Of a stretch of 52,025 nucleotides of DNA, positions 2,178 to 44,070 are shown piece by piece. How positions within the stretch are numbered: the first letter of the stretch is position 1; each line of letters begins with the position of its first letter. The translations under genes and the position numbers were made by a program. Origin of the DNA: Octopus bimaculoides (Eukaryota); assembly GCF_001194135.2 (NCBI RefSeq), contig NC_068994.1:28368549-28420573 (forward strand), in the 5' to 3' direction. The notes beneath the pieces were generated by a model. That model ran no database searches. It saw only the letters and a list, made by a program, of their open reading frames with translations, and was not told the DNA's origin.

Positions 2178-5100
2178 CGTTACCCATTTTTGTCTTTGAT
2201 CACATTGTTTGCTTACATCTGATGTCTCAATACGAAATGTAGTAAAAACAGTGTTGGCTATAAATACTGTAGAATATCTGTAAAAATAACCTTAACAAAA
2301 TATTACCATATTGTTTTAACAGCCACACAGTCACATCCTCTCAAAACAGCCTTTAATACATTAACATCATACTAGCACTCAATTTATTTCATAAGAGAAT
2401 TTTGTAAAAAAAAGTGTCAGTTACCCAACAAACGATGGTACAAGAAGTACAGCTGTGGCCAATGCATAAATCAGATCACCTTGATGGCTATTGTTCAATT
2501 TTTTCTTCAAAAATATTGTACACACCTAAAAAAAATATATAATATCTGTAAATTTTTCATCATTATCATTCATTTAAGTCCATTTTCTCAAAAACACCTA
2601 CAAGGTTTTCATATATCATTTATGAGGACTTATTTTATAGTTTAATTTTAACTCCTGAGAACTATATGGTTGCATGATCTGCTAGAAATAGTAACCAAAT
2701 ATCCTTCAAATCATATCCTACTGTTTTAAAAAAAAAAAAGACAGAATAGTCACAGCAAGTCTGCTCAGTCAACACTGACCTGAAGTTGAACAATAATAAC
2801 ATACTTCTTTTAAATTCTAGAGCGCATTCTTTGATCCTTCATCTAACTAAGCTTCTCCAGAATTAACTTTCATTTTTCTTTTGTAATTATCTCACAAGAT
2901 TTTTCCAAATTTTTTTCTTATTTCCATGTAGCCCCTCTTGCAATGCAATGTTATCAGTTGTACCCTTTCATCTCCCATTACACTGTCGGAAAACTATTTA
3001 AAGTATTGTTGTGATAGGATAACATGTTCCTTGGTTTGTTGTAACTATCAAAGCTAAGGCTGTACTGAAGCACTGTCTTTAAAATATGGCTATTTATTGT
3101 ATTTTATTAACACTCATTTATTTTATAACAATCATAATAATCACACATTTTTCAGGAGCAAAACAGTTCCTTACTTCAAATGTGTTAACACAAACCTAAC
3201 TATCTAAATAACTTTCTGGCAAGCTACTGGCCTATTTGGATTATTTCTCTTAGCTCATTATTTCAATTATGCAAGTTAGTTATTACCAAAAATCTTCAGA
3301 ATTCTTCCAAAATGTATGCATGAATCTTGATGATCACAACTGTCTTGAGTAAATTATACAATGCTAATGAGGTCCAATAACACCGAAACATGTCCTCCCT
3401 TGGCTTATTTGAGTTATTATTTCTCTTAGCTCATTTTATTTTCTGTTTTTCTCTGATATATTTCTGTTGTGTCAAAGCTAAAGAAACAACTGAATAATTC
3501 AAGATTATGCCTCTAGTATAAGTTCCAACTGCTATTTTTTATACCAAGAGTTAAACCTTTGTTGTCATTAGGTCTATATATCACTTCTGTGTAACATTCT
3601 ACAAAACACAAACACAACCTACATTGGAGAAGTGCTCATGTATCACAAACAGAGCTGATGTACACACACAAACATCCTCAAATGCAGACAAAATAAAAGC
3701 CTGGTTAATTGACAAAGACTCCCATACCAATCTGGTATAACCATAAACCACATACTATTAACACACATCATCAACATCATCATCATTTTAACATCCACTT
3801 TTCCATGCTTGCATGGGTCTGATGGAATTTGTCAAGACAAATTTTCTATGACTCGATGCCCTTCCTGTTACCAACCCTCACTTGTTTCCAGAAAGTGATA
3901 TTTCTTATGGTCAGATATATTTTTCACAGAGAAGTAGAGATGAATAACACCACTTGCTTTCTGAACTATCATCTCTCTATTTTCAAGTAGTCATCTCAAT
4001 TTTGTTTCTCCGTTAGTAAACAATAATCCCAGTACTCCCTTCCTAATATTGCAGACCCTGAAACTCACTCCCTACCAACATCTTCCCACCTCACAGGTGA
4101 AGCTGAACATCAAAAGTACCCCCTGTCAGAGAACTTGTAGAGATCAAAGAAACTCATCTGTTTTCCTCTAACTAAATAGTAAATAAAACCCACTTCAAAT
4201 GACAGAGTAACACCAGTGAGCAGTAACAATGAAACTCCTGGTAAATTGCATCATTAGAAAGTAAATAGCTTTCCATCAGTTTCAACGATGAAGATTCAGT
4301 TGTTCAATCAACTGGATAACCTGCTTATTAAATTAGCATGAAAGTGGATGAGTATTCCACAGGCACATGTACCATTAACATAATTCTCAGCATGACAGTG
4401 TGTGACAAGGCTATACTTTTGAATACTTTTGACTGTACAGATATAGTCCATTCAACAGGCTTTCACATAGCTTCTGCCAACCCTACTTAGCTTACAAGGC
4501 TTGAATCAATCCAAGACAATGGTAAAAGACACTTAAGGTGTCATATAGTGGGATTGAGCCCAGCACTTCATCATTATGAAGCAAACTTCCTGACAATTCA
4601 GTTATGCTCTGTCCACATATTACATATAAATAGCAATAAACTCAACTCCAGTGGACTTAAAAGATACATTTTTCATCTTGTACATTTGTGGAACTGAAAC
4701 TTTTCAGAGAAATTTCAGTTTCCTTTCTTACCTTCTCTGTCTCATTCCAATTTTACTCAGAAAAGATGATCCCAGCCACAAACAATTATGTATAAACCTA
4801 TTTTTATTTCTGAGAGAATATCACATAATTTTAAACTAATATTACAAAGGGAAAATAACTTGAAATAGAATGATCAAGCATAATAAGAAATTCAGAAATT
4901 GGTTAGTATATAAAAGTGTTGTGTTATTTAATCTTAAAAGTCAAACAAGAGAGATTATAATATTTGGATTAAAACATACCATCAGCCACAAAGGAAGAAT
5001 AACTAAGATGATGCATAACAGTATCCAAAGCTTGATATCAGACCACATAATCTGAGAGTCAGGGAAGAAGAAATCAGGAAATAATTCCACCTAAAATAAA

Positions 5101-5194: not shown

Positions 5195-6090
5195 AATTCA
5201 TCATCATCAAGATCCCTTAACTGCTGCAGCCAGTTGTTGGAGTGCCACTTTAGATACTTTCATAGTCAGCCATTGCCACTGGTCTCTGTTCTCTGTCATG
5301 CATAACAGGTTCACAGTGCTGTGAACAGTCCAGTCCCTTGATGTTGCCAAACCAGAATTTTCTCTGCTTCTCTTTCGCCTTCCCTCAAGTTGTGGCAGGA
5401 TACATGACCACACTAGGTAAGCTTCCGTCTTTTTTACCTGCAGAAGGAGTGGCTCCTGTCTGCCAGCATATTTGTTGGCTTGCTGCCTGATAAAGCTGTT
5501 CAGTTTTGTGCTCTGTATACGGGATGTGTAATAGCCTTCTGAAATACTTATGCTCAAATATCTGGATACTTTGCTCCATGTCAGCTATAAGTGTCCAGCT
5601 CTCACATCTATACAGAAGGACTGAGGTCACTAGGGTCTTGTGCACTCTGAGTCTTGTTGGAAAACTAATGAAATTGCTTTTCCATATATTGTTCAGCTTT
5701 GTTGTGGCAGTAGAGGCTAAGCGGAGTCTTGTTATTATCTCCCTTTGAGATGCTCCAATTCTCCAGAAAGAAGTCAAAGGGGCAATGTACATGCTCAGAC
5801 ATAGGAAATCCCCTGGAGTGGATAACATCCCATCAGAGCTAAAACATGGAGGGCCAAAGCTTATCAAGGCACTAACAGTTACCTGTCAGAAGATATAGGA
5901 GAAAGCAGTGGCCAAAGGAGTGGACCCACTGATGATATCCATTCCCAAAAAGGCAACTTAAGACTCTATAAGAATTATAGAACCATCAGCCAAATTAGTC
6001 ACCCCAGCAAAGTATTGTTAAGAGTTTTGCTAAACAGACTTAAGGGGAAGACAGAAGAAATCTTTGACCAAAGCCAGCAGATCTCAAAAG
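5195..6090. mobile_element. Degenerate RTE-type LINE ORF2 with an inverted 5' segment
   Basis: Minus strand 5745->5200: EIITRLRLASTATTKLNNIWKS...VLLYRCESWTL... ending in a (GAT)n tail. Plus strand from ~5749: DAPILQKEVKGAMYMLRHRKSPGVDNIPSEL...NYRTISQISHPSKVLLRVLLNRL, which is the RT N-terminal part. Confidence 0.8.
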
Positions 6091-8805: not shown

Positions 8806-10943
8806 TGGTTTGAGTGAATGTCAATGACAAATACAAAATATATTCTGTTCAGTATTTTTTACAGTGTAAAATCTCTTTTACAGAATAAAATATATATCAC
8901 CATGAATAACTATTTTCTGTAAAGTTATGAACATGACATAGTCTTGTTTTCTCTTTTGTGGATCTCTTGATAAATTAAGTATCAGCTAAGAATGAATTGC
9001 TGTTTCCTTCACCAGATAGATCTTGAAGCCTAATAATATTCTCAGATCATGTACATTTATGCATGATAACTTGATAATTCAGATTTTAACAGTTGCAGAT
9101 TTTATCCAGAAATGCAATGAAAATGCACCTGATGTGATACATGACCTCTAAGTTCCCCCTTACCTTATTTTTATTTTTTGCTTATTCATTCATTTATTTA
9201 TTTATATATTTCGTGATTTAATCAGGGGAGGATAAACAGCCTCAGTAACCTCTTTTGCAGATTCTCAAGAGCCAAGGGCAACGGATTAAGTTTACTGTTC
9301 AAGTAATGGTATGATAAACATAAACAACATTATGACTAATCACAAACATGAAAAAACTGAAAGCATTACATTATCCTTCCCACCAGTTGTAATCTGAGCT
9401 GCCCTGATTTCATGAACATTAATTTGCATTTAATAAAGCAGGTATCTAAGAGTAACTTAAATCATACTGTTGTTGTTGTTGTCATTCTGTTATTTTTTTC
9501 TAGTTTTCTTTTCTTACTTAAGAATATTAGTGACATACATGAAACAAATAACTACAACATGGCTAACAGTCCCTAGTAATGTAAGTATAGAAATATATGT
9601 AACCAAATCTCTACCTTTCCTTCCTCTCACTGTTTATCATACTTCTTCTTACAACAATTATGGGGGCTAATGTAATCAACTGTAGCAATCCCTAATATAA
9701 GAAATCATTGTTATTTATTCATGATTTGAAAGATACATTGTTTTCTTTCTTAGAACTCAAAGAATCTTAATAATGCTAAAACTCTAGGTGTTTGTTTGTT
9801 CCCGAAATATCTCAGAAACAGTATATTTTATCTTAATTTTCATACTTACTTTATGCAGTGCAGTATGAGGTTTTGTGATATATGGATCTCTATTTATTAA
9901 TAAAAACGGTTAAACACAATTTTTGTTTGTTATTTTTTGATGAGAAAACATGGCTTCCCTGACATCAACACACATACAGAATACACACACATATAATGAA
10001 CGTCATGGCATGTGAATCAACACAAACACACGTACACTATCTGTGACATATACACACACAGTCATTGCACTCTCTATCACTCTCTAAGGAAGAAAAAAAC
10101 GTTGACTTCACCCCTTCCTTTCTCATTCATATGTTGTGATGGAGAAAAAGAAAAGAGAAAGAACGTTTCTAGTTTTTCTTTTGTTAAACACAGCACAAAG
10201 TTTTGTCAGTGAACAGGTCACAGTTTCAAAGCGATGAAATTATTTTGACACAAATTAAATTTAAATGTTGAAGTGAAATTAACGGTTTTTGTATGTTCTT
10301 AAATGGCTTACAAACATCTTCCATGCTGCAATTGTTTTTGTTTCAGCACACGATCTCAAATCAAGTCACTTGCTAGGCAAGTACATCTCCATAATATTTT
10401 AATCATTTAGAAATATTTTTAAGTGAATGTGATTTCAAAAATATAAGTTGTTTGTACAGTAAGTATTTATATTTTAACTTTCTTTAAACAAAGAATATTT
10501 TTACGTTTTTTAAAATTATTTTCAAGTGAATATTATTACAAAAATTCTTTTTGGCATATTTAAGAAATATTTTAAAGTGAAAATGACTTTAAAAATACGG
10601 TAAATATTTTGTAAAAGACCTGTTCATAACTTCAGTGTGAAATAGTTATTTTCCATAGATTTTTTCTGAGTGCATTCAACATATTTCACCTCCAAAGATT
10701 TGGCTGCTATGTCTAGTATACCCTGCAACCACGTAACAGCTATTTGCAATAAAGGATCTGAAATACCTGTTATGTGGTAGCAGGGCGTGCAAGAAATAGC
10801 AGCCAAATCTTTCCTCTTGGGGGAAAGGATCCGTTTATGCATGATTTCGATATCACATTCTTTGACAAAATGGGAAATCACATTGAAAAGAAAAAAAATT
10901 AACCCATGAAACAAAACTCCATTGCTGGGAAACTCAGAGTTTT

Positions 10944-11112: not shown

Positions 11113-11290
11113 TGTGGTGTTATGACCCAGGCTGTGTTGTAGGGAAGGACCGGAAGTGAGGGAGTACGTATGTCCTGACGGAAGTGGGGCCTGTGGGTCC
11201 CACTGGAAGGGCTGCAGTGGGCATGCAGGGTCGGTGAGGCGCAAGCAGTCAGTTGGCTCTTTGATGAGTATAGAACCTTTGGACACATGA
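11113..11290 (+). mobile_element. Partial, more diverged copy of the LTR at 12563-12892
   Basis: tgtggtgttatgacccaggctgtgttgtagggaagg... aligns by eye with 12563-12685 over ~120 bp, then diverges. Confidence 0.65.
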
Positions 11291-12030: not shown

Positions 12031-12562
12031 GCTACCAATGTTATATCCGGTATGATCACTTGTGCACAAGAGTGTGTGTGTCAGCCAGTGGATGCACTTG
12101 GTATTGTAGGACCCAAGATCTAGATCTTTGGGTTACTGCTGGAAAGCTGAGTTGAAGTTTATGTGAAATGACCACTAAGTCCCTTGAAGGCCTTAGGAGC
12201 CATATGAGGCATCATCAGTGATGAGGAAACCAAACATAAGATGTTTTTTAGACTGAAATAGGTTTAGGAAGTGGTGTTACTCAGTCACAAGTCAGCTTCC
12301 ATATCAATAGTGCTGGTGACACAGAAAGAGCATTCGGTAACTACTGTAAAGTGATTGGGATTAGGAAGGGCATCCAGCCATAGAAACCATGCCAAAGCGG
12401 ACACTGGAGCTTAATGCAGTCCTTGATTCCTCAGATCCTTGTCAAACTATCCAACTCAAATAGTTTACATTATGAAGGATACCCAACCATAGATTCCAAG
12501 GCAAAACCAAGATATTGGAGTAAGATATGGTCATCCAGCCTGTTAGAACTTGTCAAACTGTC

Positions 12563-13010: not shown

Positions 13011-13059
<49 letters not shown>

Positions 13060-13241
13060 ACAAATTAAAAAGGTGGCTTATTAGCAATTAGAACCTAAAG
13101 GCAAAATCAAAAGAGGTCATAAAAGTGACAGAGGGTACTGATAAGCACCACTTTTGCTAAATATAAGAGTTAAAATTACTCAAAAGTTACAAAATCACTG
13201 TCTTAATGACTGAAAAAGGAAGGTAAGTCCCCAGTGTACAT

Positions 13242-13301
13242 AGTCAGATCGAGATTTCGGGTTTTGATGTACGTAGACCATCTTAATCCTCATCAGTGAC
13301 T
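13242..13301 (-). ncRNA. Type I hammerhead ribozyme, copy 1 (core intact)
   Basis: Minus strand: AGUCA-CUGAUGA-GGAUU aa GAUG gucuacgua CAUC aa AACCC-GAAA-U cucg A-UC|UGACU. Stem I is a perfect 5 bp; cleavage triplet AUC, predicted cut between 13247 and 13246. Confidence 0.85.
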
Positions 13302-13456
13302 CTTAACCCTTAGGGTTAAACTCAACTACCTCTGTCAGAAAAATCATTGAAAATATATGCTGATTTTCAAAATGGTAAAAGTGTAAACAACAAACTGAAA
13401 AGGATGGCTTATTAACAATTAAAACCTAATGGTTGACAAAAGGGAGGTAAGTCCCC

Positions 13457-13512
13457 AGCCTCTGATGAGAATTAAGATAGTCTACATCAGAATCCGAAAT
13501 CGTGATCTGGCT
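13457..13512 (+). ncRNA. Type I hammerhead ribozyme, copy 2 (core intact)
   Basis: AGCCU-CUGAUGA-GAAUU aa GAUA gucua CAUC ag AAUCC-GAAA-U cgug A-UC|UGGCU. One U-U mismatch in stem I and one A-C in stem II. Confidence 0.8.
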
Positions 13513-13790
13513 ATATATGCTGGGGACTTACCTCCCTTTGTCAGTCATTAAGACAGTGATTTTGATGCTTTTGAGGTATTTTAACTCTTATATTTAGCAA
13601 AAGTGGTGCTAGTGAGTACCCTCTGTCACTTTTGTGACCTCTGTTAATTTTGCCTTTAGGTTCTAATTGCTAATAAGCCACTCTTTTTAATTTGTTGTTT
13701 ACACTTTTATCATTCTGAAAATCAGCACGTTTTCAACAGTTTCTCTTATAAGACTAACAGAGGTAGTTGATATCAACCCTAGGCGTTGAA

Positions 13791-13845
13791 AGCTGCTGAT
13801 GAGGATTAAGATGTCTCCATCAAAATCCGAAATTGCTATGTACAT
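13791..13845 (+). ncRNA. Hammerhead copy 3 with stem III and cleavage site deleted (probably inactive)
   Basis: CUGAUGA-GGAUU aa GAUG ucuc CAUC aa AAUCC-GAAAU is followed directly by ugcuauguac; the ~8 nt containing AUC are missing. Confidence 0.7.
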
Positions 13846-13987
13846 TGGGGACTTACCCCCCTTTGTCAGTCATCAGGACAGTGATTTTGTGGCTTTTGAG
13901 TTATTTTAACTCTTATCTTTAGCAAAAGTGGTGCTAGTCAGTCTATCACTTTTGCGACTTCTATTAATATATATATATATATATATA

Positions 13988-16900
13988 GGGAGAATTCACC
14001 AAAAAAACAAAAGACGTAGACAGGTGGTGTAGACAACAAACAGATGTATTAGTTTAACACTCGGGAAGTGAAAAAGTCTTTAACGTTTCGAGCCTACGCT
14101 CTTTCACAGAAAGGAACACGGAAAGAAACAAGAAGAGAAAATAAAGAATGTGTAGTGGCTAGCGATCTATCATGGCGAATGCCAGACAGAGAGGTCACAC
14201 AGGAGAGCTAGGAAGAAGGGGAGGTAATAAAATAGTGGTGATCCCAAAACGAAAGTGCGCATGCGTGTCTATAAGAGAGTATGTATGTGCATGTGGAAGA
14301 GGGCTGGTGACTTTGACGTGTGTATGTGTAGGTGTGAAAATGTGGGGCTAGGAAGTAGTCAGTGCTAGTGTGTGCATCGTGGTGTGATGTGATGTGTTGT
14401 GTGGTATGGTGGTGTATGGTGTAGTGGTGAGTGGTGTGGTGTGGTGTGATGGTGTTGGGAGGTGGGGGAGGCGAGTATGGGGAAAGCAAGGGTGGAGTGT
14501 GGGTTAGGCTGTGGGTGGGGATAGAGGTGGGATNNNNNNNNNNNNNNNNNNNNNNNNNNNNNNNNNNNNNNNNNNNNNNNNNNNNNNNNNNNNNNNNNNN
14601 NNNNNNNNNNNNNNNNNNNNNNNNNNNNNNNNNNNNNNNNNNNNNNNNNNNNNNNNNNNNNNNNNNNNNNNNNNNNNNNNNNNNNNNNNNNNNNNNNNNN
14701 NNNNNNNNNNNNNNNNNNNNNNNNNNNNNNNNNNNNNNNNNNNNNNNNNNNNNNNNNNNNNNNNNNNNNNNNNNNNNNNNNNNNNNNNNNNNNNNNNNNN
14801 NNNNNNNNNNNNNNNNNNNNNNNNNNNNNNNNNNNNNNNNNNNNNNNNNNNNNNNNNNNNNNNNNNNNNNNNNNNNNNNNNNNNNNNNNNNNNNNNNNNN
14901 NNNNNNNNNNNNNNNNNNNNNNNNNNNNNNNNNNNNNNNNNNNNNNNNNNNNNNNNNNNNNNNNNNNNNNNNNNNNNNNNNNNNNNNNNNNNNNNNNNNN
15001 NNNNNNNNNNNNNNNNNNNNNNNNNNNNNNNNNNNNNNNNNNNNNNNNNNNNNNNNNNNNNNNNNNNNNNNNNNNNNNNNNNNNNNNNNNNNNNNNNNNN
15101 NNNNNNNNNNNNNNNNNNNNNNNNNNNNNNNNNNNNNNNNNNNNNNNNNNNNNNNNNNNNNNNNNNNNNNNNNNNNNNNNNNNNNNNNNNNNNNNNNNNN
15201 NNNNNNNNNNNNNNNNNNNNNNNNNNNNNNNNNNNNNNNNNNNNNNNNNNNNNNNNNNNNNNNNNNNNNNNNNNNNNNNNNNNNNNNNNNNNNNNNNNNN
15301 NNNNNNNNNNNNNNNNNNNNNNNNNNNNNNNNNNNNNNNNNNNNNNNNNNNNNNNNNNNNNNNNNNNNNNNNNNNNNNNNNNNNNNNNNNNNNNNNNNNN
15401 NNNNNNNNNNNNNNNNNNNNNNNNNNNNNNNNNNNNNNNNNNNNNNNGTGGTAGGTGAGGGGAAATGGGAGGTTGGAGATGGCGGGGTGGGTTCGGGGGA
15501 GAGAGCAGATGCACAGTCCACGGAATATGCTCTAGCAAGGACGGTGTGGATAGTGGTGAGGGAATATCCATGTAGGGTGAAGTGGCGAGCCATGGTTTTC
15601 ACTACAGAGCCTGCGTAGGCGGAGGAATTGGGAATAGGGGATGGAAAGCTTGGTGTGTTTAGGGTTGGAGGAGGAGAAGTTGAGGTATGAGTGTGAATCT
15701 GTGTGTTTGTAGTGGATGGAGGTGGTGAGAGTGGAGTGATGAATGCTGACCGAGATGTCAAGAAAGGAGACAGAAGTGTTAGAGATAGTGCAAGAGAAGT
15801 GGCGGGCAGGATGGAAAGATTTGACAAAAGAGAGGAAGGAGTCTAGATGTTCGCGAGAGAGTGAGGTCGAACCAATACAGTCGTCAATATAACGGCCGTA
15901 TAGTTCGGGAGTGGGACCAGTGAAACTTGAGAATATTTGATCCTCAACGTAGCCAACGAACAGGTTCACGTAGTTGGGAGATGAGGTCATGGATAGTGGA
16001 GGACACAGTCGGTTGGTAGCTGGGCGTGGGGTCAGAGCGCAGATGGCAGTAGAAGGAGGTGTCTTGAAGTTGGCGGAGAGGTCTGTGCGCCACACCACCA
16101 CGGCTCCACCCTTATCGGCTGGTTTTATGATGATGTTATTGCTGCATCGGAGACATCAAAGGGCTGAGAGTTCGGCTGGGGAGATGTTCAGATGATGGGG
16201 ACGCCTAGAAAAGTTAAACCGGTCCACAGCGCGCTGGCAGGCGCCCGCATAAAGAACANNNNNNNNNNNNNNNNNNNNNNNNNNNNNNNNNNNNNNNNNN
16301 NNNNNNNNNNNNNNNNNNNNNNNNNNNNNNNNNNNNNNNNNNNNNNNNNNNNNNNNNNNNNNNNNNNNNNNNNNNNNNNNNNNNNNNNNNNNNNNNNNNN
16401 NNNNNNNNNNNNNNNNNNNNNNNNNNNNNNNNNNNNNNNNNNNNNNNNNNNNNNNNNNNNNNNNNNNNNNNNNNNNNNNNNNNNNNNNNNNNNNNNNNNN
16501 NNNNNNNNNNNNNNNNNNNNNNNNNNNNNNNNNNNNNNNNNNNNNNNNNNNNNNNNNNNNNNNNNNNNNNNNNNNNNNNNNNNNNNNNNNNNNNNNNNNA
16601 GGAGAGGAAGCGTATCAGGAGGGGAAGGGTAGTGGAGGAGTTGGGGGTAGTGACATCGGGTATGATGGAATGGAGGTGTGAGTGGAGTTTATGTTGTTTG
16701 GTGTGAACGAGAAATTGATGAAAGAGATGATTTAAATGAATTATGTAACGTAACGTGGTGTTGGCATGGGAAGGCGACTGAGAGGAGAAGAAGATGGAAA
16801 AAGCAAGAGGGAGAAGACGGTCGATGGTGTGTATTTTGGAGAGATTAGAGCGAATGATGGCACGCATAAGGTGGTAGGATGTAGTACGGAGTATGGGTAG

Positions 16901-17460
16901 GATGGTTGTAGCAGAGTGGAGAGTCGGAAACCTTTAGGGATGAAGCGGTGATGTAAGCAGCGACTGAGAAATGAAATGTGACTAGAGAAACGAGTTGTTT
17001 TGAAAGTTAGTAGAGAAAGATTAATAGAAGGTTGAAAGCAGCGGAAAGGAAGTGTGCGAAGGTATTGCTTTAAACAGTTGTGGAGGTCGAGGAGGAAAGG
17101 TTTGTAATCGGGCATGATTGTAAAACGAGAAGAGAAGAGAAAGAAAGGAGAAAAAAGGGAAAAAGGGGTGGAGAGGAAAAATTCATAAGGTGTGGGGAGA
17201 AAAAAAGCAAAAGGCGTGAGGAGAAAAAATGCAAAAGGCGTGAGGAGAAAAAAATATATATGATTGGTGGGAGAAGAAAATAAAAAATAGGAAAAGAAAG
17301 GACGAAGATGGAAGAAACAGAGAGAAAAGGGGGAAAAGAAAAGACGACACACAGAGAAGAATAAGCACACACGGACATACAGACAAGAACAAGCACGCAC
17401 ACACAGACACACAAGCAAGAACAAGCACGCACGCACAACCCATTAGCTTTCATCTCCTCC
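13988..17460 (-). mobile_element. Penelope-like retroelement (PLE), degenerate, with two internal gaps
   Basis: RT: PNYVNLFVGYVEDQIF...YGRYIDDCIG...VSFLDISV...LTTSIHYKHTDSHSYLNFSSSNP...IPYSQFLRLRRLCS (ORF 15532-16101). N-terminus HISFLSRCLHHRFIPKGF (ATG ~17115). The GIY-YIG domain is expected in gap 14534-15447 and cannot be seen. Confidence 0.85.
14078..14113 (-). ncRNA. Degenerate minimal hammerhead in the PLE pseudo-LTR
   Basis: Minus strand: CUUU-CUGUGAA-A GAGC guag GCUC-GAAAC GUU A-AAAG. Stems I and II are present, but the core deviates from CUGANGA at two positions. Confidence 0.5.
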
Positions 17461-24608: not shown

Positions 24609-25069
24609 GTTTGGCACTTCAAATAGTGTCGTTGATGACTACAACAGCTTGTACCGACACGTGGAGGGGAGTTCACGGCAGGCATTCCAGTCAGTTGAAA
24701 GTATTGTTCAAGCCTTTACCTCAGTTAGTATGATGTTGGATTCAACATTCCAGGCCTTGTATAGTTCTTTCAGAGCTGTAGTAGGTGTAGCTGACAATCT
24801 TTCTCGTCTCCGTTCTCAGTTATACAGCATCCTGTCAGCTTTGGCCATCATGCGAACTCTGAAGTACATCATTCGTAAAATACTGGAGGTGTTCAGATTG
24901 CGACCAAAGGGCCATGCAGCAGCAGCTTGGCAAGAGGCTTCAGCTGGTTTATTACCCCAGCAATCCATTTTTTCTGCTGATTCAAAAGGGCTCAGTTCTT
25001 GGCCCATTTTAATGTTTTTTGGAATCATAGTTGGTGCTCCATGGTTGATTTGGAAATTAATCTCTCCAA
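24609..25069 (+). CDS. PEX13: PEX13 coding exon 3 (Peroxin-13_N domain and transmembrane segment)
   Basis: SSRQAFQSVESIVQAFTSVSMMLDSTFQALYSSFRAVVGVADNLSRL...SSWPILMFFGIIVGAPWLIWKL; tctcag| acceptor and |gtgagt donor, phase 2-1. Confidence 0.95.
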
Positions 25070-25282
25070 GTGAGTTTTGTTTTATATTTTTCCCTTTTGC
25101 CTTAATCTTCAGATATTTTTTTTTTCAGTTTAATCAATGAAAATGTACAATGTAGGGGTCAATAAAATGAGTATTAGTGAAGGACTGGGGTCAATATAAT
25201 TGACTGACCTACTCCCCTCAAAATAGCTGGCCTTGTGTCAAAAATTAGAAAGAATTATTATTATATTGTGTCTATATCAAAT

Positions 25283-25656: not shown

Positions 25657-26529
25657 ATCTTAATTTTTTTTACAGGAATGTTGGCTATTATGATTATGAA
25701 ATTTTTTTTCTCAGTTTTAATCTTTATATTTGGAAGTAAGATACTCAGATGTAAGTGAGACGTACATTTGACACAATAACTTCCTAGATAAAATACCTAC
25801 TTTCTGATGACTGTAGTGACTAAGTTCCCACTACAGACAGATACGAAGTGGACAATCCTTCCTCTCTTTTACTTTGTTTTCCTATGTGACCTACTATGGC
25901 TGTCATATTATAAGACTAGACAGCTACAGATTAATTTTATAGTTATTATTAGGTCCAGTCTTTTGTTACTAAAACTGGTCTTTCACAGAATGATATCCAA
26001 CTATACAGACATTTGTTCCAACAATATGAAATATCCTCCAATCCATATCAAGTTAACATGAGATTAGTCACCAATTGATATTGTTACAAAGGTGGGTCTG
26101 AAAAAGCAGTGGTGTGTCACAAACCCTCTTGGTCCTTTTACATTCTGTGTTCAAATTTGACAAGGTTAGATTTTCCTCCCACTCTTCCAGGGCCAATAAA
26201 ATAAAGTACAGTCATGTACTGAGGTTGATTTAATTGACTGTAACTCTTCCTCTTAAAAGTATGGTTTTGTAATTATTTATTATTTGCTAGATCTGAAGGA
26301 AGGTCTTCACAAGTCATCTGAAACTGGTGAGGTTAAGGTCTTTAATGCTCCAAGTCAATTCCTGTAGGGAGGGGAGATAAATCTGGAAAACTAACATTCT
26401 CGAAAAGAAGGAAGGCCAGGCTGTACTGGTTAATGTAGGACCTGGGTAGGGGTGTTGGATATAAAAGAAGTGATGAATAAATGCTATTCTACATTGTGAA
26501 AGCCTCCAATATTATAGTACAGCTGACAT

Positions 26530-26770: not shown

Positions 26771-28212
26771 TCTCCCCTTTTGAGATTTTGAGTTCTGAAG
26801 GAATAAAGAAATTTTATTTATTATTATCATTTTTTTAGTATCTTTTTCGCTTGAGCCTTATCTCAAGGTGTTCAGTCTGCTTCTGTTTTCTCATGCTGGT
26901 TCTATGGGACTCCATTACTTTCAGTGTTGGGACATCGAATACATCTAAAAATACTTCCATAGGAATTTCTCTCCATTCTTTGGTATGTCTCTTCTTTAGC
27001 TGATTTATGTCTCTCTTTAATTGTGGTCTTTTAATTAGATACATCATACTTCCTATTTTTTGGCTACAAGGCCATCCTCCCAACCTTCTTTACCATTTCT
27101 GTAGGTTTTAGATGCACTTTATCTCCTACTTCGAAATATTTCGTTGCATCTTTTGTATTTCCTTTACATCTTTTTTTCTCTGGCAATAACTTATCAAAAA
27201 TCGATTTTATTCTTCTTGTGAACATCAACTCTGCAGATGACTTTCCTGAATTTGTACTTGACTTAGGGGTTATTTTATATACCCTTAATAATTTTGTTAG
27301 TGCTTCATTGTTACTTAATTTGTTCCTAGCTTTTCTTAATGCTCTTTTGAATGTGTTCCCGAATCTTTCTACCTGCCCATTTGACCTCGGATGGTAGGGT
27401 AGAGTGAAAATATGCTTTATTGCATGCATTTTACAGAAGTTCTTGAATTCATACCCCATGAATTGCGTTCCATTATCAGAAATTAAAGTGTCTGGAACAC
27501 TGTATCGCGCAAACAATTCATATAGGAACTTTATAGTTGTCATAGTGGTTGGTTTATTGCATCTGCATATCTCTGGCCACTTTGTATGGCTGTCTACCAT
27601 GATTAGATAGTAAGCGCCATTCACCAGTCCAGCATAGTCGATATATAACCTAGCCCATGGGTTTGCAGTCTCTAGCCATGATTGATAGTTTACCAGTAGG
27701 GCTGTGACTGCGAGTGTGCAACCTCAACAAGTTCTCACCAAATTTTTGATATCCCAGTCCATAGTCAGCCAATAGCTGTAGCTCCTCTTCAGAGCTTTCA
27801 TCCTTGACATAACTAGGTGTTTGCTGTGGGATTGCTGCAATACACGTTTTGGTAATGTAGTTGATACTACAACTCTTTGCGCATACATCAGAATATCGTC
27901 GCATATTGAGAAACTACCCGAATTTGTATTTTTTTTCTACTTATTTTTTAAAGCTTCTTTCATTTTTGTAATATACTCATTGCATACAGATTTCATTCTT
28001 ATATCCTGTGCAATTGCTGACAGTTCTTAGACAACATTAGTCATAATACTTTCTATTTGATTTTCTGCCTGCAGTGCGGCTATGACAGTATCTTCTAGTG
28101 GTTCTGTATTTTTGGGAATTAATCTTGATAGACAGTCTGCATGACCAATTTTTTGTGATGGAATATACTGCATTTTGAAATTGTTATTTAGTAATATTAT
28201 ACCCCAACACTG

Positions 28213-28584: not shown

Positions 28585-30693
28585 ACCCCAACACTGTAGT
28601 CGGTTTGCTGTATTTGTAGGTAACCCTTTCTTTGACCCATAAATTGATAGCGATGTTCGATGATCTGTTTGTAACAGAAAACTTATACCATGTAAAAACT
28701 TGTGAAATGATTTTACAGCAAAGATAATTGACAGGGCTTCTTTTTCTATTTGACTGTATTTTTTTCTCTACCACTATCAGTGAACATGAACATAGATCCT
28801 ATTCTGTACTTCAAAGCATCAGATGCTACAACAATGTCCATTTCAGGATCTAAAAATGCACTAGAGACAAATCTGCGATTAGAATTTTTTTATTTTTTCA
28901 AATGCGTTATTGCATTTAACCGACCAATTCCACTTTACTTCCTCTTAATTTGTGCATGTTAGGAACGTAATTTTGGTAGTTGTTTGCCAGCCCAAGCAAC
29001 GCTTGTAATGTTGGTATATTTGTCGGAGCAGGCATATTCTTTATTGCGCCTGCCCTTGACGGGTCAAGTAGTCTACCATTTTTATCAATTATTTACCCTA
29101 AGTACTTAATTTTAGGCAAAAAGAATTTACATTTTTCTTTACTCAAAGTGAACCCATACTCTTTAATTTTCTTGAACACAGCTTTTATATGCTCCATATA
29201 CTCTACATGCAAATTACTCATAATATATCATCCAAATAAGGGATTGCAAATCCACAATCAGATAACATAGCATCTGTGATTTGCTAAAATATTGCCCAGT
29301 GTAACCTTTAATCCGATAACCAGATATATCTGTACAATCCTCTATGTATATTTATTGTCAGATACTTTGAGCATTTGTCATTTACTTTAATCTGTAAATA
29401 AGCATCAGACAGATCCAATTTGGAGAAAATTTTTCCACCATTTAATTTTGAGAAAATATCCTCTGGAGTCAGGAGTGGAAGGTGGCATGTCTTTAAGCAG
29501 TCATTCAAACCTATAGAGAAATTGGCACACAGCTTAATCTTATTTTTTCTTTTTAATACATGCCATGGGTGTCACCCACTTAGAGTAATCCACCCTTTTG
29601 ATGATTCCATTCTTTTCCAGTCTGTCCAACTCTTCATTTACGCTTTCAATTGCTGCGAACAATACATTTCTGTTAGATTTAAATACAGGCACAGCATTTT
29701 CACTTACTTGAAAGCAGACTTCAGTCTTTTTACATGGACCTAAGTTCTCGGATAGTACTTGAGGAAACATCTTTTTGAATTTCTCTTCAATTCCTCAGAC
29801 AATTTAGTTTTAATGGGACAACCATTTATGTTTTCGCAGTGGAGATTTATGGGGAGGTGCCATAAGTCAAATAACTCCAACCAATCTGTACCAAACAGAT
29901 TGATTGCATTCTCCACTATGAATATTTTTGCCTTGCACATTTCTCCTGGAAGTGTGATGTCTGTACACATTTCGCCCATGAAATGTAATTTATTGCCTGT
30001 CATGCCACACACAATTTTTGCTGTTTTACGTAATCTTGGTTTCTTGATTTTTCTCCATGTATCTGCATTTATGATTGAAATATAACTACCTGTATCCAAC
30101 TGTAATTTAATATTTACACCATTTATTTTTACGTGTACAAATTTCCTTGTTTTTGTGTTGTATTCAGTTTCTGCTGAAAACACCTTAGAACTTTTTTGCA
30201 TTCGACCCTTGTAATCTTGTCCTGTAGTGTGAGCTCTTGCGACCAAGTTTCTGACAACTATAGCATTTCCAGTTTTTAAATAGACACTCTTTTGTGAAGT
30301 GTAGGTCTCTACATCTGTAACATAGATTGGGGCCTGGCACTCTTCTATTATACTTTCCGGGTCGACATATCTGTATTTTTGCGGAATCTTTCTCTTGAAT
30401 ATTTTTCGCATCATGCTTCAGCTTTACTATTGTTTGACATTCTTCTGCAATGGTCTGTAGGGTTAAGTTTTGGTTCGCTTGCTCCATTTTTGAGGGAATC
30501 CTTGCCCAAATTTCTCTATCCTTGGTTGCCATAAGGCTTTGTACGAAGATAAGGGATTTAAACATATCCTGAGTGAATTCCTGGAGTTTAAAGTTGCAGC
30601 TAACTGGATTGATTGGGTGATGACTTATCTGTTTGTCTTAATGTTTATTGATTATTTATCAAGGTACTGTTTTATTTTTATTTTTCATTATCA

Positions 30694-37982: not shown

Positions 37983-38666
37983 NNNNNNNNNNNNNNNNNN
38001 NNNNNNNNNNNNNNNNNNNNNNNNNNNNNNNNNNNNNNNNNNNNNNNNNNNNNNNNNNNNNNNNNNNNNNNNNNNNNNNNNNNNNNNNNNNNNNNNNNNN
38101 NNNNNNNNNNNNNNNNNNNNNNNNNNNNNNNNNNNNNNNNNNNNNNNNNNNNNNNNNNNNNNNNNNNNNNNNNNNNNNNNNNNNNNNNNNNNNNNNNNNN
38201 NNNNNNNNNNNNNNNNNNNNNNNNNNNNNNNNNNNNNNNNNNNNNNNNNNNNNNNNNNNNNNNNNNNNNNNNNNNNNNNNNNNNNNNNNNNNNNNNNNNN
38301 NNNNNNNNNNNNNNNNNNNNNNNNNNNNNNNNNNNNNNNNNNNNNNNNNNNNNNNNNNNNNNNNNNNNNNNNNNNNNNNNNNNNNNNNNNNNNNNNNNNN
38401 NNNNNNNNNNNNNNNNNNNNNNNNNNNNNNNNNNNNNNNNNNNNNNNNNNNNNNNNNNNNNNNNNNNNNNNNNNNNNNNNNNNNNNNNNNNNNNNNNNNN
38501 NNNNNNNNNNNNNNNNNNNNNNNNNNNNNNNNNNNNNNNNNNNNTTTAGAGATTTGGAATTTATCGTTTGACTTGTAAAATTTTTGGTTTCATCTGGATT
38601 ATCGCAACATTCTGTTTCTCTAGTTTCATAATTTTTTTAGTTCAGTAAAAGTAACAGTATCATATT

Positions 38667-39663: not shown

Positions 39664-41210
39664 TTAACCATTTCAATACTAACCCGACCGAGAGTACCCA
39701 TTGTTATTTAAATGTAAATTTGAACACAAATCTTGTTAGTACATTCATGAAAACGTGATTTCACTTTGGCATGATATTTGAACTTGGTAAATTTTGGAAG
39801 ATTTTCCCCCACATTTTTTGTGGCATTGATTTTTTTCAACTTTGAAAATGGAGTGGAGTTTCATGCTGTCAAGCAGTGATTCCGAATTTGAAGGCTTTTC
39901 AACAGAAGATATAGAGAAAAAGAATGAATGAGGTACATGGTGAGTGAAAATGAATTGTCTATTTCTGCATCCGAAACCAGCGATTCTGAAGAAACTGAAA
40001 GCGGTGACAGCGACAGCGAGGACGATTTTACACCAGAATGAAGTAAAAACTTCCAAGGAGATAGGGTCTACTCAGTCTTTCCCAGAAAGTGAAACCATAT
40101 ACTTTTTATTATTTTTTTCCAGTATGCTTGCTTGAAGCGATTACTGCAGGCTTGTGGTTTCCCCACAACCGTAGAAGAAATACGAGCATTTTTTGCCATA
40201 AATATTATTATGGGTATTAGACAGTTACCCAGAATAACAAATTACTGGAGTGATCAGGAACCTTTTGGCGATGAATATATTTCCAGTATTATGAACGAGT
40301 ACGATTCGTGAAGCTGAACCAATATTTACATGCGAGAGACACTAGCAGTACCCCAGTACGTAGAGAACCAAACTTTGATCCCTTATTTAAAATAAGACCC
40401 CTCATTGACTGCATTCAAAATGCATATAAAACAGTTTACAACCACGAGAGATACTTATCCATCGATGAGGGCATGGTGGGGTATAAAGGAAGGGTACGCT
40501 TCCAACAGTATATGCCAGGAAAGCCTATGAAATGGGGGATCAAAGTTTGGAAAATTTGTGAAGCAAATACTGGGTACTGCTGTGGATTTAGTTTTTATAC
40601 AGGGAAAAGAGACAATAATGTTAGTCAGTATGGTCTAGGGTATGATGTGGTCTGGAATTTATCACTTCCATCAGGGCTGTAAATTATTTTTTGACCAATC
40701 TTTTAGTCCAGTCAAACTTGCAGTGGATTTAGAAGCTGTAGCAACGTATACATATGCAACAGTAATTGCTAGTAGAAAAAAGGCTGCCGTTAGATATAAA
40801 AAAAGCAAAATTGAAAAGGGTAAAATAATCCAATAGCAGAAAGGAAATCTGCTAGCAACCGCATACAGAGATAGGCAAATAAATAAACCTGGGGTTTGCA
40901 AAAGGCAGTGCCTTGAATGCCTACATCAAAAAAGAAAAACTAACAGTGGACGGCCAGTTAAAACATCCCTCCAATGTGCATTCTGCAAGGTTGCAGTATG
41001 GAGAGTGGGATTCAGAATCACAGCTTGATAGCATGAAACTCCAATCCATTTTCAAAGTTGGAAAAAAAAACCGATGCTGAAAAAATGTGGCAAAAAATCT
41101 CCCAAAATTCACTGAGCTCAGATATCACGCCAAACAATAACAATGGACACTTTCGGCCGGCTGCCTCTCACGAACTAAAGGATGTTTTGGCTGGCCATGT
41201 CCAGGTTGGT
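39664..41210 (+). mobile_element. piggyBac DNA transposon, degenerate, in RPS7 intron 6
   Basis: DPLFKIRPLID...LSIDEGMVGYKGRVRFQQYMPGKPMKWGIKVWKICEANTGY (DDE_Tnp_1_7-type). ~110 bp subterminal inverted repeats at ~39785-39900 and ~41005-41115. Left end TTAA|CCATTT at 39664. Confidence 0.85.
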
Positions 41211-43569: not shown

Positions 43570-44070
43570 TTTGTTTTTAAAGTTCAGAGGATCCATCCAG
43601 CTAGCCAACTGCATTTTATTACCAAATTGGTAATATACACTTGAAAACATGCATTACTGCTCATGTCAATGCCCAGATCATGCACTGATTTTGATTCTGG
43701 GACTTGAATTCCTCCTGGGCCAGTGTATCCGGTCTGCATGTCATTTAGCTCTGTGTTGGTAGCATAGGGCCTGGAATTTTCCTGCATGTAGTTGTCTTCA
43801 GCCCACCTATATATTGCTTCCAACTCCCATTGCAGATGTGCAATATTTTCAGGATTTTGTATTGTCTGAGAGACTGTTGTGGCATCTGCATAGCTAGCAT
43901 GGGTGGCTATCTGAGCAGCCGAGGACATGTCTGAGAGGGCCACTATGAATAGCAGTGGCTCTAAGACAGTGCCCTGTGGAACACCACTTGCTATTTGTTT
44001 CCTTGGAGGTGGCCCCATTGGCCACCACTGCCTTTCTTTTGGAAAGTTGTGCAGCCACTCTCCAAGTTTT
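43570..44070 (-). mobile_element. CR1/L2-type LINE RT fragment in RPS7 intron 4
   Basis: SGVPQGTVLEPLLF...YADA...LQWELEAIYRWAEDNYMQ. Confidence 0.8.

Follow-up and report, generated by a model that had tools for sequence, protein, structure and literature searches.

Non-long-terminal-repeat (non-LTR) retrozymes are recognised as short (150-450 bp), low-GC, non-coding direct repeats that co-occur with Penelope-like elements (PLEs), and the core of their hammerhead ribozymes follows the rule CUGANGA / GAAAY / RUH given by the retrozyme authors. Cervera and de la Pena described a helix III of 2-3 bp for invertebrate retrozymes, and a 2026 preprint argues that animal retrozymes descend from the pseudo-LTRs of PLEs. 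Here we analyse a 52,025-nucleotide stretch of the Octopus bimaculoides genome (contig NC_068994.1, forward strand, positions 28,368,549 to 28,420,573; hereafter the window, numbered from its first letter), which contains a repeat of the first kind and, as a sign of the second trait, the remnant of a PLE reverse transcriptase (RT) at 15448-17100 on the minus strand. In our view the segment 13059-13968 probably represents a single composite insertion of old date, left by a non-coding hammerhead element of the kind called non-LTR retrozyme or non-autonomous PLE derivative, which was mobilised by PLEs and is by now decayed.

PLE insertions have been described as partial tandems, often with an inverted copy adjacent to them, with an optional extension of 30-40 bp at one end and a bias towards microsatellite targets (Craig et al. 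2021, PMC8557442), a bias towards (TA)n being reported for the Naiad clade (PMC8557442). A purified PLE protein nicks AT-rich DNA and reverse transcription starts at two internal sites of the RNA, the optional tail being the stretch between them (Frangieh et al. 2024, PMC11167929). The hammerheads of PLEs present a short helix I and a long helix II, and occur in pairs on opposite strands, 100-700 bp apart (PMC4209133).

Four partial units inside a (TA)n microsatellite

The first-pass annotation of this DNA, made from the letters alone, had proposed a tandem repeat of three copies. Its period of 334 bp between the two plus-strand copies was confirmed by repeat analysis and alignment, and the lack of coding capacity that it noted also holds (no stop-free stretch exceeds 56 codons), but the locus is made of four partial units arranged head to head and not of a simple tandem array. 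The unit is 332 bp long, with a GC content of 36%, and non-coding. Copies of this ~334-bp unit share 83-88% identity with one another in pairwise alignments, which indicates that the insertion is old and that the palindrome is no artefact of the assembly. We refer to the three hammerhead motifs as M1 (on the minus strand), P1 and P2 (both on the plus strand).

From left to right, a flank of (CT)n followed by (TA)n microsatellite (13011-13058, by direct reading; repeat family D1) leads into the inverted part. Its outermost piece is a tail of ~48 nt (13059-13105, minus strand) which lies beyond the usual 3' end of the unit and is equivalent, in the alignment of M1, P1 and P2, to 13649-13696 of the plus copy. 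Next comes an inverted full-length unit, the M copy (13106-13436, minus strand; inverted repeats I1, I3 and I4), 83-88% identical to the plus copies and with an inner start equivalent to 13648-13652. Together with its tail the inverted copy spans 13059-13436, that is, one full unit plus ~48 nt at the outer end. The head-to-head junction is formed by a 26-nt inverted fragment (13434-13459, minus strand; inverted repeat I16 and alignments), where 13439-13459 and 13519-13539 make up a perfect inverted repeat of 21 nt. On the plus strand, alignments delimit a 5'-truncated unit beginning at the hammerhead (the P1 part, 13459-13648) and, in direct tandem with it, a full-length unit also seen in the repeat analysis (the P2 part, 13649-13968), which ends in TTAAT at the (TA)n microsatellite of the right flank (13967-13988, direct reading). 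The direct-repeat part amounts to 1.6 units with a period of 334 bp, and the inverted arms are complementary over 210 nt at 88%, 107 nt at 89%, 75 nt at 88% and 60 nt at 82%. P2 ends at the equivalent of 13648, and M1 extends 47-48 nt beyond that point.

Conservation within the unit is highest not in the hammerhead but in a block at 13581-13612, with copies at 13906-13937 and at 13172-13141 (minus strand), the sequence of which, TTTTAACTCTTAT.TTTAGCAAAAGTGGTGCT, is the same in all three copies except at one position. This block could be a recognition site for the RT or the endonuclease, or could be due to chance.

Anatomy of the hammerhead motifs

All three CTGATGA...GAAA motifs listed in the first-pass annotation are present, at 13296-13255 (minus strand), 13462-13499 (plus) and 13796-13832 (plus), and the cut positions had been read correctly, with C17 at 13247 on the minus strand and at 13507 on the plus strand. 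M1 (13242-13301, minus strand), located by reading of the core, by a relaxed descriptor and by a covariance model named R1 (both described below), appears to be the only copy that keeps the core, the three helices and the cut site, which falls between 13247 and 13246. Its sequence, AGUCA-CUGAUGA-GGAUUAAGAUG-GUCUACGUA-CAUCAAAACCC-GAAA-UCUCGA-UC-UGACU, forms a helix I (AGUCA/UGACU) with five of five pairs and an open end, which makes the motif type I. Of the 11 positions in helix II, 8 are paired. The helix is closed by two G-C pairs, after which come an A.C mismatch, two U-A pairs, an internal 2x2 loop (A.A) and a distal stem of 4 bp. Helix III consists of 2-3 bp, A-U and U-A with C-G as the third. 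No tertiary contacts between loops 1 and 2 were found, the pairing of helix I stopping after 5 bp so that no loop 1 can be defined.

P1 (13457-13512, plus strand; direct reading and relaxed descriptor) has an intact core, a U.U at 1.1-2.1, an A.C at 10.2-11.2 and a weakened distal helix II. The stem I pairing proposed earlier for the first copy (AGUCA/UGACU) is as described, and the one proposed for the second (AGCCU/UGGCU) comes down to four of five pairs, with the U.U at 1.1-2.1. The relic P2 (13791-13845, plus strand; alignments) carries the best helix II of the three, GGAUU/AAUCC plus GAUG/CAUC. Its cleavage site is deleted, as had been noticed: 7-8 nt are gone, including the 3' half of helix III and C17. 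The distal GAU(G)/(C)AUC stem reported as an extension of stem II exists in the copies, while what had been called a bulge is a 2x2 internal loop, A.A in general and A.G in P1. The core reads CUGAUGA / GAAAU / AUC in M1 and P1, its RUH part having been lost from P2 with the deletion, and the core of the unit obeys the rule of the retrozyme authors.

In a majority consensus of the three copies the proximal helix II runs without interruption for 5 bp (GGAUU/AAUCC). Each copy departs from this consensus by lesions of its own: M1 carries C in place of U11.3, P1 carries A in place of G10.2 and of a distal G, and P2 carries the deletion. Read from these alignments, separate lesions off a shared consensus appear to be decay from a better ancestor.

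A compensatory change from U-A to C-G had also been claimed for stem I. The double change is real and affects the third pair of helix I in M1 versus P1, but it is a single event, located at the inversion junction: the C of P1 (13459) is the final base of the 21-nt perfect inverted repeat, and homology to the other copies stops there. The 5' side of P2 also has a C, with a partner in or beside the deletion that is not unambiguously readable. In the comparison of the three copies, seven stem differences were counted, four of which keep pairing, all in helix I, and three of which break it, all in helix II. Nowhere in the locus do these patterns give a sign of selection on the ribozyme.

Scores of the motifs against chance

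The annotation had suggested a check with Infernal, whose outcome depends on the model: the Rfam hammerhead models found no match, and a custom retrozyme covariance model supported M1 only. A relaxed descriptor, requiring that four of five pairs form in helices I and II, that A15.1-U16.1 be joined by a further pair and that H17 be other than G, is matched in the window by M1 and P1 alone, where 0.08 matches are expected per 52 kb.

The custom model, R1, was built from three cleaving hammerheads, coral Amil224, mussel Mg353 and axolotl Ax353 (PMC7229834, suppl. Table 2). Its top match in the window is M1, with 22.4 bits and an E-value of about 3e-4, a rough figure owing to a shortened calibration. 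With the filters off, P1 scores at background level, with 12.0 bits, and P2 has 6.3 bits. The next-best match in the window (12171-12225, minus strand, 12.6 bits) has a CUGAUGA and a UGCC...GGCU hairpin without GAAA; we take it as a chance partial match that marks the level of chance. As a control, two canonical hammerheads in an unrelated animal contig, L122, score 22.1 and 17.9 bits with the same model, so that M1 equals the better of them. Forced into the hammerhead fold, M1 has a free energy of -3.0 kcal/mol, 7.3 above its minimum free energy (MFE) structure, in line with the 7.4 of the validated mussel ribozyme. The corresponding values for P1 are +1.4 kcal/mol and 16.2 above the MFE. According to these models M1 is a credible hammerhead and P1 is probably inactive, and the hammerhead of P2, lacking its cut site, is dead.

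An insertion of PLE style next to a PLE

The layout of the segment corresponds to that of a PLE insertion in its inverted copy, its tandem of a truncated and a full unit, its two 3' ends ~48 bp apart and its AT-rich target. Both outer ends lie in (TA)n. The plus arm ends at the equivalent of unit position 13648 and the inverted arm ~48 nt further, while the inverted full copy has its inner start no more than ~4 nt away from the 13648-equivalent end of the P arm, a coincidence with a chance of ~2% for a 334-bp unit. Likewise, the two usable hammerheads are on opposite strands, ~165-215 bp apart, as reported for truncated PLE insertions. A comparable structure is found in contig L122, where a palindrome of ~410 bp (2429-2837, arms 96-99% identical) has a canonical type I hammerhead in each arm, at 2770-2811 (plus strand) and at 2455-2496 (minus strand), the second with G8 changed to A. 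This palindrome resembles a truncated hammerhead element that was inserted head to head not long ago.

The PLE remnant (15448-17100, minus strand) is 1.5 kb away from the 334-bp repeat. It is a degenerate RT (IIIKPADKGGAVVVW ... YGRYIDD) with 471 homologues at E<=1e-5, cut by assembly gaps, with frameshifts and an internal deletion of the RT core. Its endonuclease part cannot be seen; the gap may hold it. Two runs of N (14534-15447 and 16259-16599) are located inside the PLE, as expected of repeats that break short-read assemblies. Over 129 amino acids the RT is 66% identical to that of another contig, L123, which is followed there by an open reading frame (ORF) with a GIY-YIG domain above the Pfam cut-off. 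The combination of an RT with a C-terminal GIY-YIG domain is the Penelope-like architecture. The DKG motif of the remnant is unmodified, which places it with the canonical, hammerhead-carrying clades and not with the Naiad clade, whose motif is DKA (PMC8557442).

Downstream of the PLE ORF, in sense with it and ~90 nt from the (TA)n, we found a dead minimal hammerhead of PLE type (14077-14114, minus strand), CCUUU CUGUGAA A GAGC GUAG GCUC GAAA CGU U AAAG, or in a variant writing CUGUGAA-A-GAGC-GUAG-GCUC-GAAACGUU. With the minimal hammerheads of L122 (CUGACGA-A-GGGC-UAAC-GCUC-GAAACGUC) it agrees at 21 of 30 positions, and the essential core positions A6 and G8 are mutated. The two minimal hammerheads of L122, at 9793-9820 (minus strand) and 11185-11212 (plus strand), are identical, share a 3' terminal block of ~190 nt and are inverted around a PLE ORF fragment, an arrangement that amounts to a textbook inverted pseudo-LTR pair. 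The octopus relic is homologous in position to these intact hammerheads that flank the PLE of L122. The relic and the 334-bp repeat lie beside one (TA)n, so a single microsatellite has taken in both the 334-bp element and a PLE with a hammerhead of its own that has since died. A search for an inverted PLE end on the left flank gave a score within the range of shuffled sequence.

Taken globally, the PLE-style layout, the (TA)n and the PLE remnant support that part of the retrozyme reading of the first-pass annotation which sees here a hammerhead-bearing, non-coding, retrozyme- or Penelope-associated repeat of ~334 bp. The set of ribozymes that it envisaged is less well supported: only M1 scores as a hammerhead.

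What the locus could do, and the search for other copies

The mechanism that we propose borrows its life cycle (transcription, cleavage, circularisation and integration by a PLE) from the published biology of such elements. Tandem copies would be transcribed and the RNA cleaved after C17, and a host tRNA-type ligase would then circularise the cleaved RNA. The PLE reverse transcriptase and its GIY-YIG endonuclease would nick AT-rich DNA and copy more than one unit length, starting reverse transcription at either of two internal sites and producing in this way the optional tail, with an inverted copy often added during insertion. In this scheme the element would be a non-coding hammerhead passenger of PLEs which inserted once, long ago, as a tandem of more than unit length with an inverted partner, and which has been decaying since.

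Linear or circular RNAs of ~330 nt had been predicted, and these cannot come from this locus as it stands, where neither strand keeps more than one cut site that could still be used. On the plus strand a weak site remains (13507) and the other is deleted, the minus strand has a single site (13247), and with no more than that no unit-length RNA can be excised from either. Two or more usable hammerheads in direct orientation are not present at the locus. Judged on its sequence, the locus seems to be dead or nearly so, a neutral relic.

Copies of the unit were also sought outside the window. A metagenome scan with CTGATGAGRATTAAGAT returned at least 120 matches, all unrelated to the unit by BLAST. 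Viral contigs and prokaryote genomes, scanned for the most conserved block and for the whole helix II pattern, had no match. The unit translated in six frames and joined into one pseudo-protein, aimed at spurious ORF calls on other copies, likewise had no match at E<=10 among 5.8 billion proteins. Five animal contigs fetched through their PLE homologues (L121-L125) have no repeats in common with the window, so they come from other organisms, and no similarity to the unit was found in PLE loci from other organisms. No tRNA-derived head of a short interspersed element was found. Finally, in the literature naming both the hammerhead ribozyme and a cephalopod, there was no cephalopod retrozyme among the matches listed, and the evidence that the retrozyme family is undescribed is weak.

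Points against a retrozyme, and alternative explanations

Several results weigh against the interpretation of the segment as a PLE-mobilised hammerhead element. The Rfam hammerhead families gave no match, either at the gathering threshold or at E<=10, in searches of the 52 kb, of 1.2 kb and of 306 nt. A strict descriptor, in which three contiguous helix II pairs are counted from the junction, has no match in the window (0.02 expected), and no copy passes it. The four kept and three broken pairs are about the neutral expectation for transitions, and the three-way invariant columns make up 0.86 of the hammerhead segment versus 0.79-0.85 of the rest of the unit. The monomer RNA is modestly structured (z = -1.66), while retrozyme circles are described as highly self-paired. 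Repeat analysis found no further copies of the unit elsewhere in the 52-kb window, and a multi-copy family is unproven, no copy having been found beyond the locus in the scans above. The tail, of ~48 nt, is longer than the 30-40 published, the unit does not resemble in sequence what can be seen of the PLE next to it, and in a window rich in other transposons the adjacency of the PLE could be a coincidence.

Part of this evidence would equally suit a chance hammerhead-like motif, without ribozyme ancestry, in an unrelated inverted or tandem repeat such as a foldback or MITE-like (miniature inverted-repeat transposable element) sequence or a duplication-inversion in a microsatellite. Rfam is silent and the strict descriptor empty, the relaxed one has an 8% chance of one match per window, P1 scores at the level of the chance match at 12171-12225, the hammerhead segment is conserved no better than the rest of the unit, and TA flanks also suit DNA elements that target TA. 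We nevertheless regard this explanation as unlikely. M1 reaches its 22.4 bits (E about 3e-4) with a model made from validated retrozyme ribozymes only, and the hammerhead of the three-copy consensus is cleaner than that of any copy taken by itself. Moreover, the motif falls in the one segment of ~0.9 kb in the window with PLE-style architecture, beside a PLE remnant, with a joint chance of roughly 0.08 x 0.02, and the ends of the insertion are different points of one unit and not the terminal inverted repeats of a DNA transposon.

Less probable still, with perhaps a slim chance of being right, is that the repeat belongs to the neighbouring PLE itself, either as its pseudo-LTR or as rearranged 3' terminal copies from the same insertion event. 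The 3' end of the PLE adjoins the same (TA)n, the pseudo-LTRs of PLEs bear hammerheads and take tandem or inverted forms, and the 914-nt assembly gap at 14534-15447 hides some of the PLE. Against this, the unit resembles neither the visible PLE nor anything upstream of the PLE ORF, the PLE has its own, different hammerhead relic of minimal type (14077-14114), and the period of 334 bp points to a short, self-contained unit.

The palindrome also makes the locus a long inverted repeat, from which read-through could yield a hairpin RNA of ~400 bp feeding small-RNA pathways. The 924-nt segment does fold as one hairpin, at -451 kcal/mol (z = -30), and a perfect stem of 21 bp flanks the P1 motif. We find such a function very improbable: the arms have diverged by 12-17%, a level in keeping with neutral decay, the loop of 59 nt is unlike those of animal pre-miRNAs, and nothing sets this locus apart from any inverted pair of transposons. 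We treat the ~400-bp hairpin as a by-product of the inversion. The 21-bp stem around P1 explains a weak match to the plant microRNA family MIR529, and the reading as a microRNA, which has little support, was rejected.

Practically negligible, lastly, is the chance that the P1 region is a C/D-box small nucleolar RNA, with CUGAUGA serving as C box and the 21-nt inverted repeat supplying a terminal stem, as suggested by a match to SNORD74 whose 14.8 bits (E 1.3-5) are far under the gathering score of 41, in a region that reads CUGG where a CUGA D box should stand beside the 3' stem and whose terminal stem is a by-product of the inversion junction.

Other features of the window

Outside the segment, a SCARNA8 small Cajal-body RNA gene is found at 25731-25857 (plus strand), with 71.5 bits where the gathering score is 53. 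Situated just downstream of an exon for the N-terminal region of Peroxin-13 (24649-25140, plus strand; Pfam E 1.2e-45), it is probably intronic. The closest protein to this PEX13 exon in the 5.8-billion-sequence collection is 75% identical. Transposon debris is present at 27064-27624 (minus strand), 29740-30414 (minus), 40308-40682 (plus), 5385-5867 (minus) and 43584-44018 (minus), and comprises parts of an LTR element, namely an integrase core (rve, E 6e-12) and an aspartyl protease, together with a fragment of a piggyBac-type transposase (DDE_Tnp_1_7, E 1e-23) and two non-LTR RT fragments. Runs of N (844-1654, 14534-15447, 16259-16599 and 37983-38544, plus two gaps of 10 nt) identify the stretch as a draft scaffold.

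Comparison with known hammerhead systems

The hammerhead repeats of amphibians, satellite 2 and the axolotl retrozymes, have in common with the octopus element a type I hammerhead in repeats of ~330-350 bp and a weak helix III. Unlike the unit described here, their helix III, of 1-2 bp and closed by a palindromic loop, functions as a dimer, their hammerheads have conserved contacts between loops 1 and 2, and they form very large tandem arrays.

With the insertions of PLEs (PMC8557442, PMC11167929) the locus shares the partial tandem, the adjacent inverted copy, the optional extension and the AT-rich or microsatellite target. It differs from them in the length of the extension (~48 nt), in a unit free of ORFs and in the additional, perfectly inverted junction fragment of 26 nt. 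In this respect the locus shows in compact form the insertion architecture of PLEs, here as the product of a passenger element without coding capacity, and its value is mainly that of a seed sequence for a genome-wide search. Should the family turn out to be active and present in many copies, the range of retrozymes would widen by one more lineage of molluscs, and the argument for their descent from PLE pseudo-LTRs would gain an intermediate ribozyme form.

The mussel element Mg353 of Mytilus galloprovincialis (Cervera & de la Pena 2020, PMC7229834) also consists of direct repeats of a non-coding, low-GC unit (~330-390 bp), each unit holding a single type I hammerhead with a CUGAUGA / GAAAY / RUH core, and the mussel genome likewise contains PLEs. 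The helix III geometry of Mg353 (GAAACGCGCGUC) is identical to that of M1, an A followed by 6 nt, U and C17, and the helix I junction is nearly identical (GUCA-CUGAUGA ... UC-UG). By contrast, helix II measures 26-31 nt here, with an internal loop, versus 13 nt in Mg353 (4 bp plus a 5-nt loop), and helix I has 5 bp without a definable loop 1; contacts between loops 1 and 2 are, as published, likewise lacking in PLE-type and mussel variants. The octopus element furthermore has 1.6 direct units plus an inverted copy, all of them decayed, and is known from the sequence of this locus alone.

The minimal hammerheads of PLE pseudo-LTRs (Cervera & de la Pena 2014, PMC4209133) resemble those of the unit in their helix I of 4-5 bp, their longer-than-usual helix II, their pairs on opposite strands 100-700 bp apart and their association with PLE insertions. 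The hammerhead of the unit differs in having a real helix III (2-3 bp, where theirs is absent), in lacking an unpaired base at the 5' end of helix II and in sitting in a 334-bp unit and not beside the RT ORF. The true minimal type is represented at this locus only by the dead relic at 14077-14114. It is tempting to see in the unit, although we hold this to be rather doubtful, an undescribed retrozyme family whose ribozyme joins the short, open helix I and long, interrupted helix II of the PLE type with a helix III of the retrozyme type, as a transitional form, and whose intact tandem copies elsewhere might yield abundant circles of ~330 nt. If true, such a transitional ribozyme would support an origin of invertebrate retrozymes from the pseudo-LTRs of PLEs.

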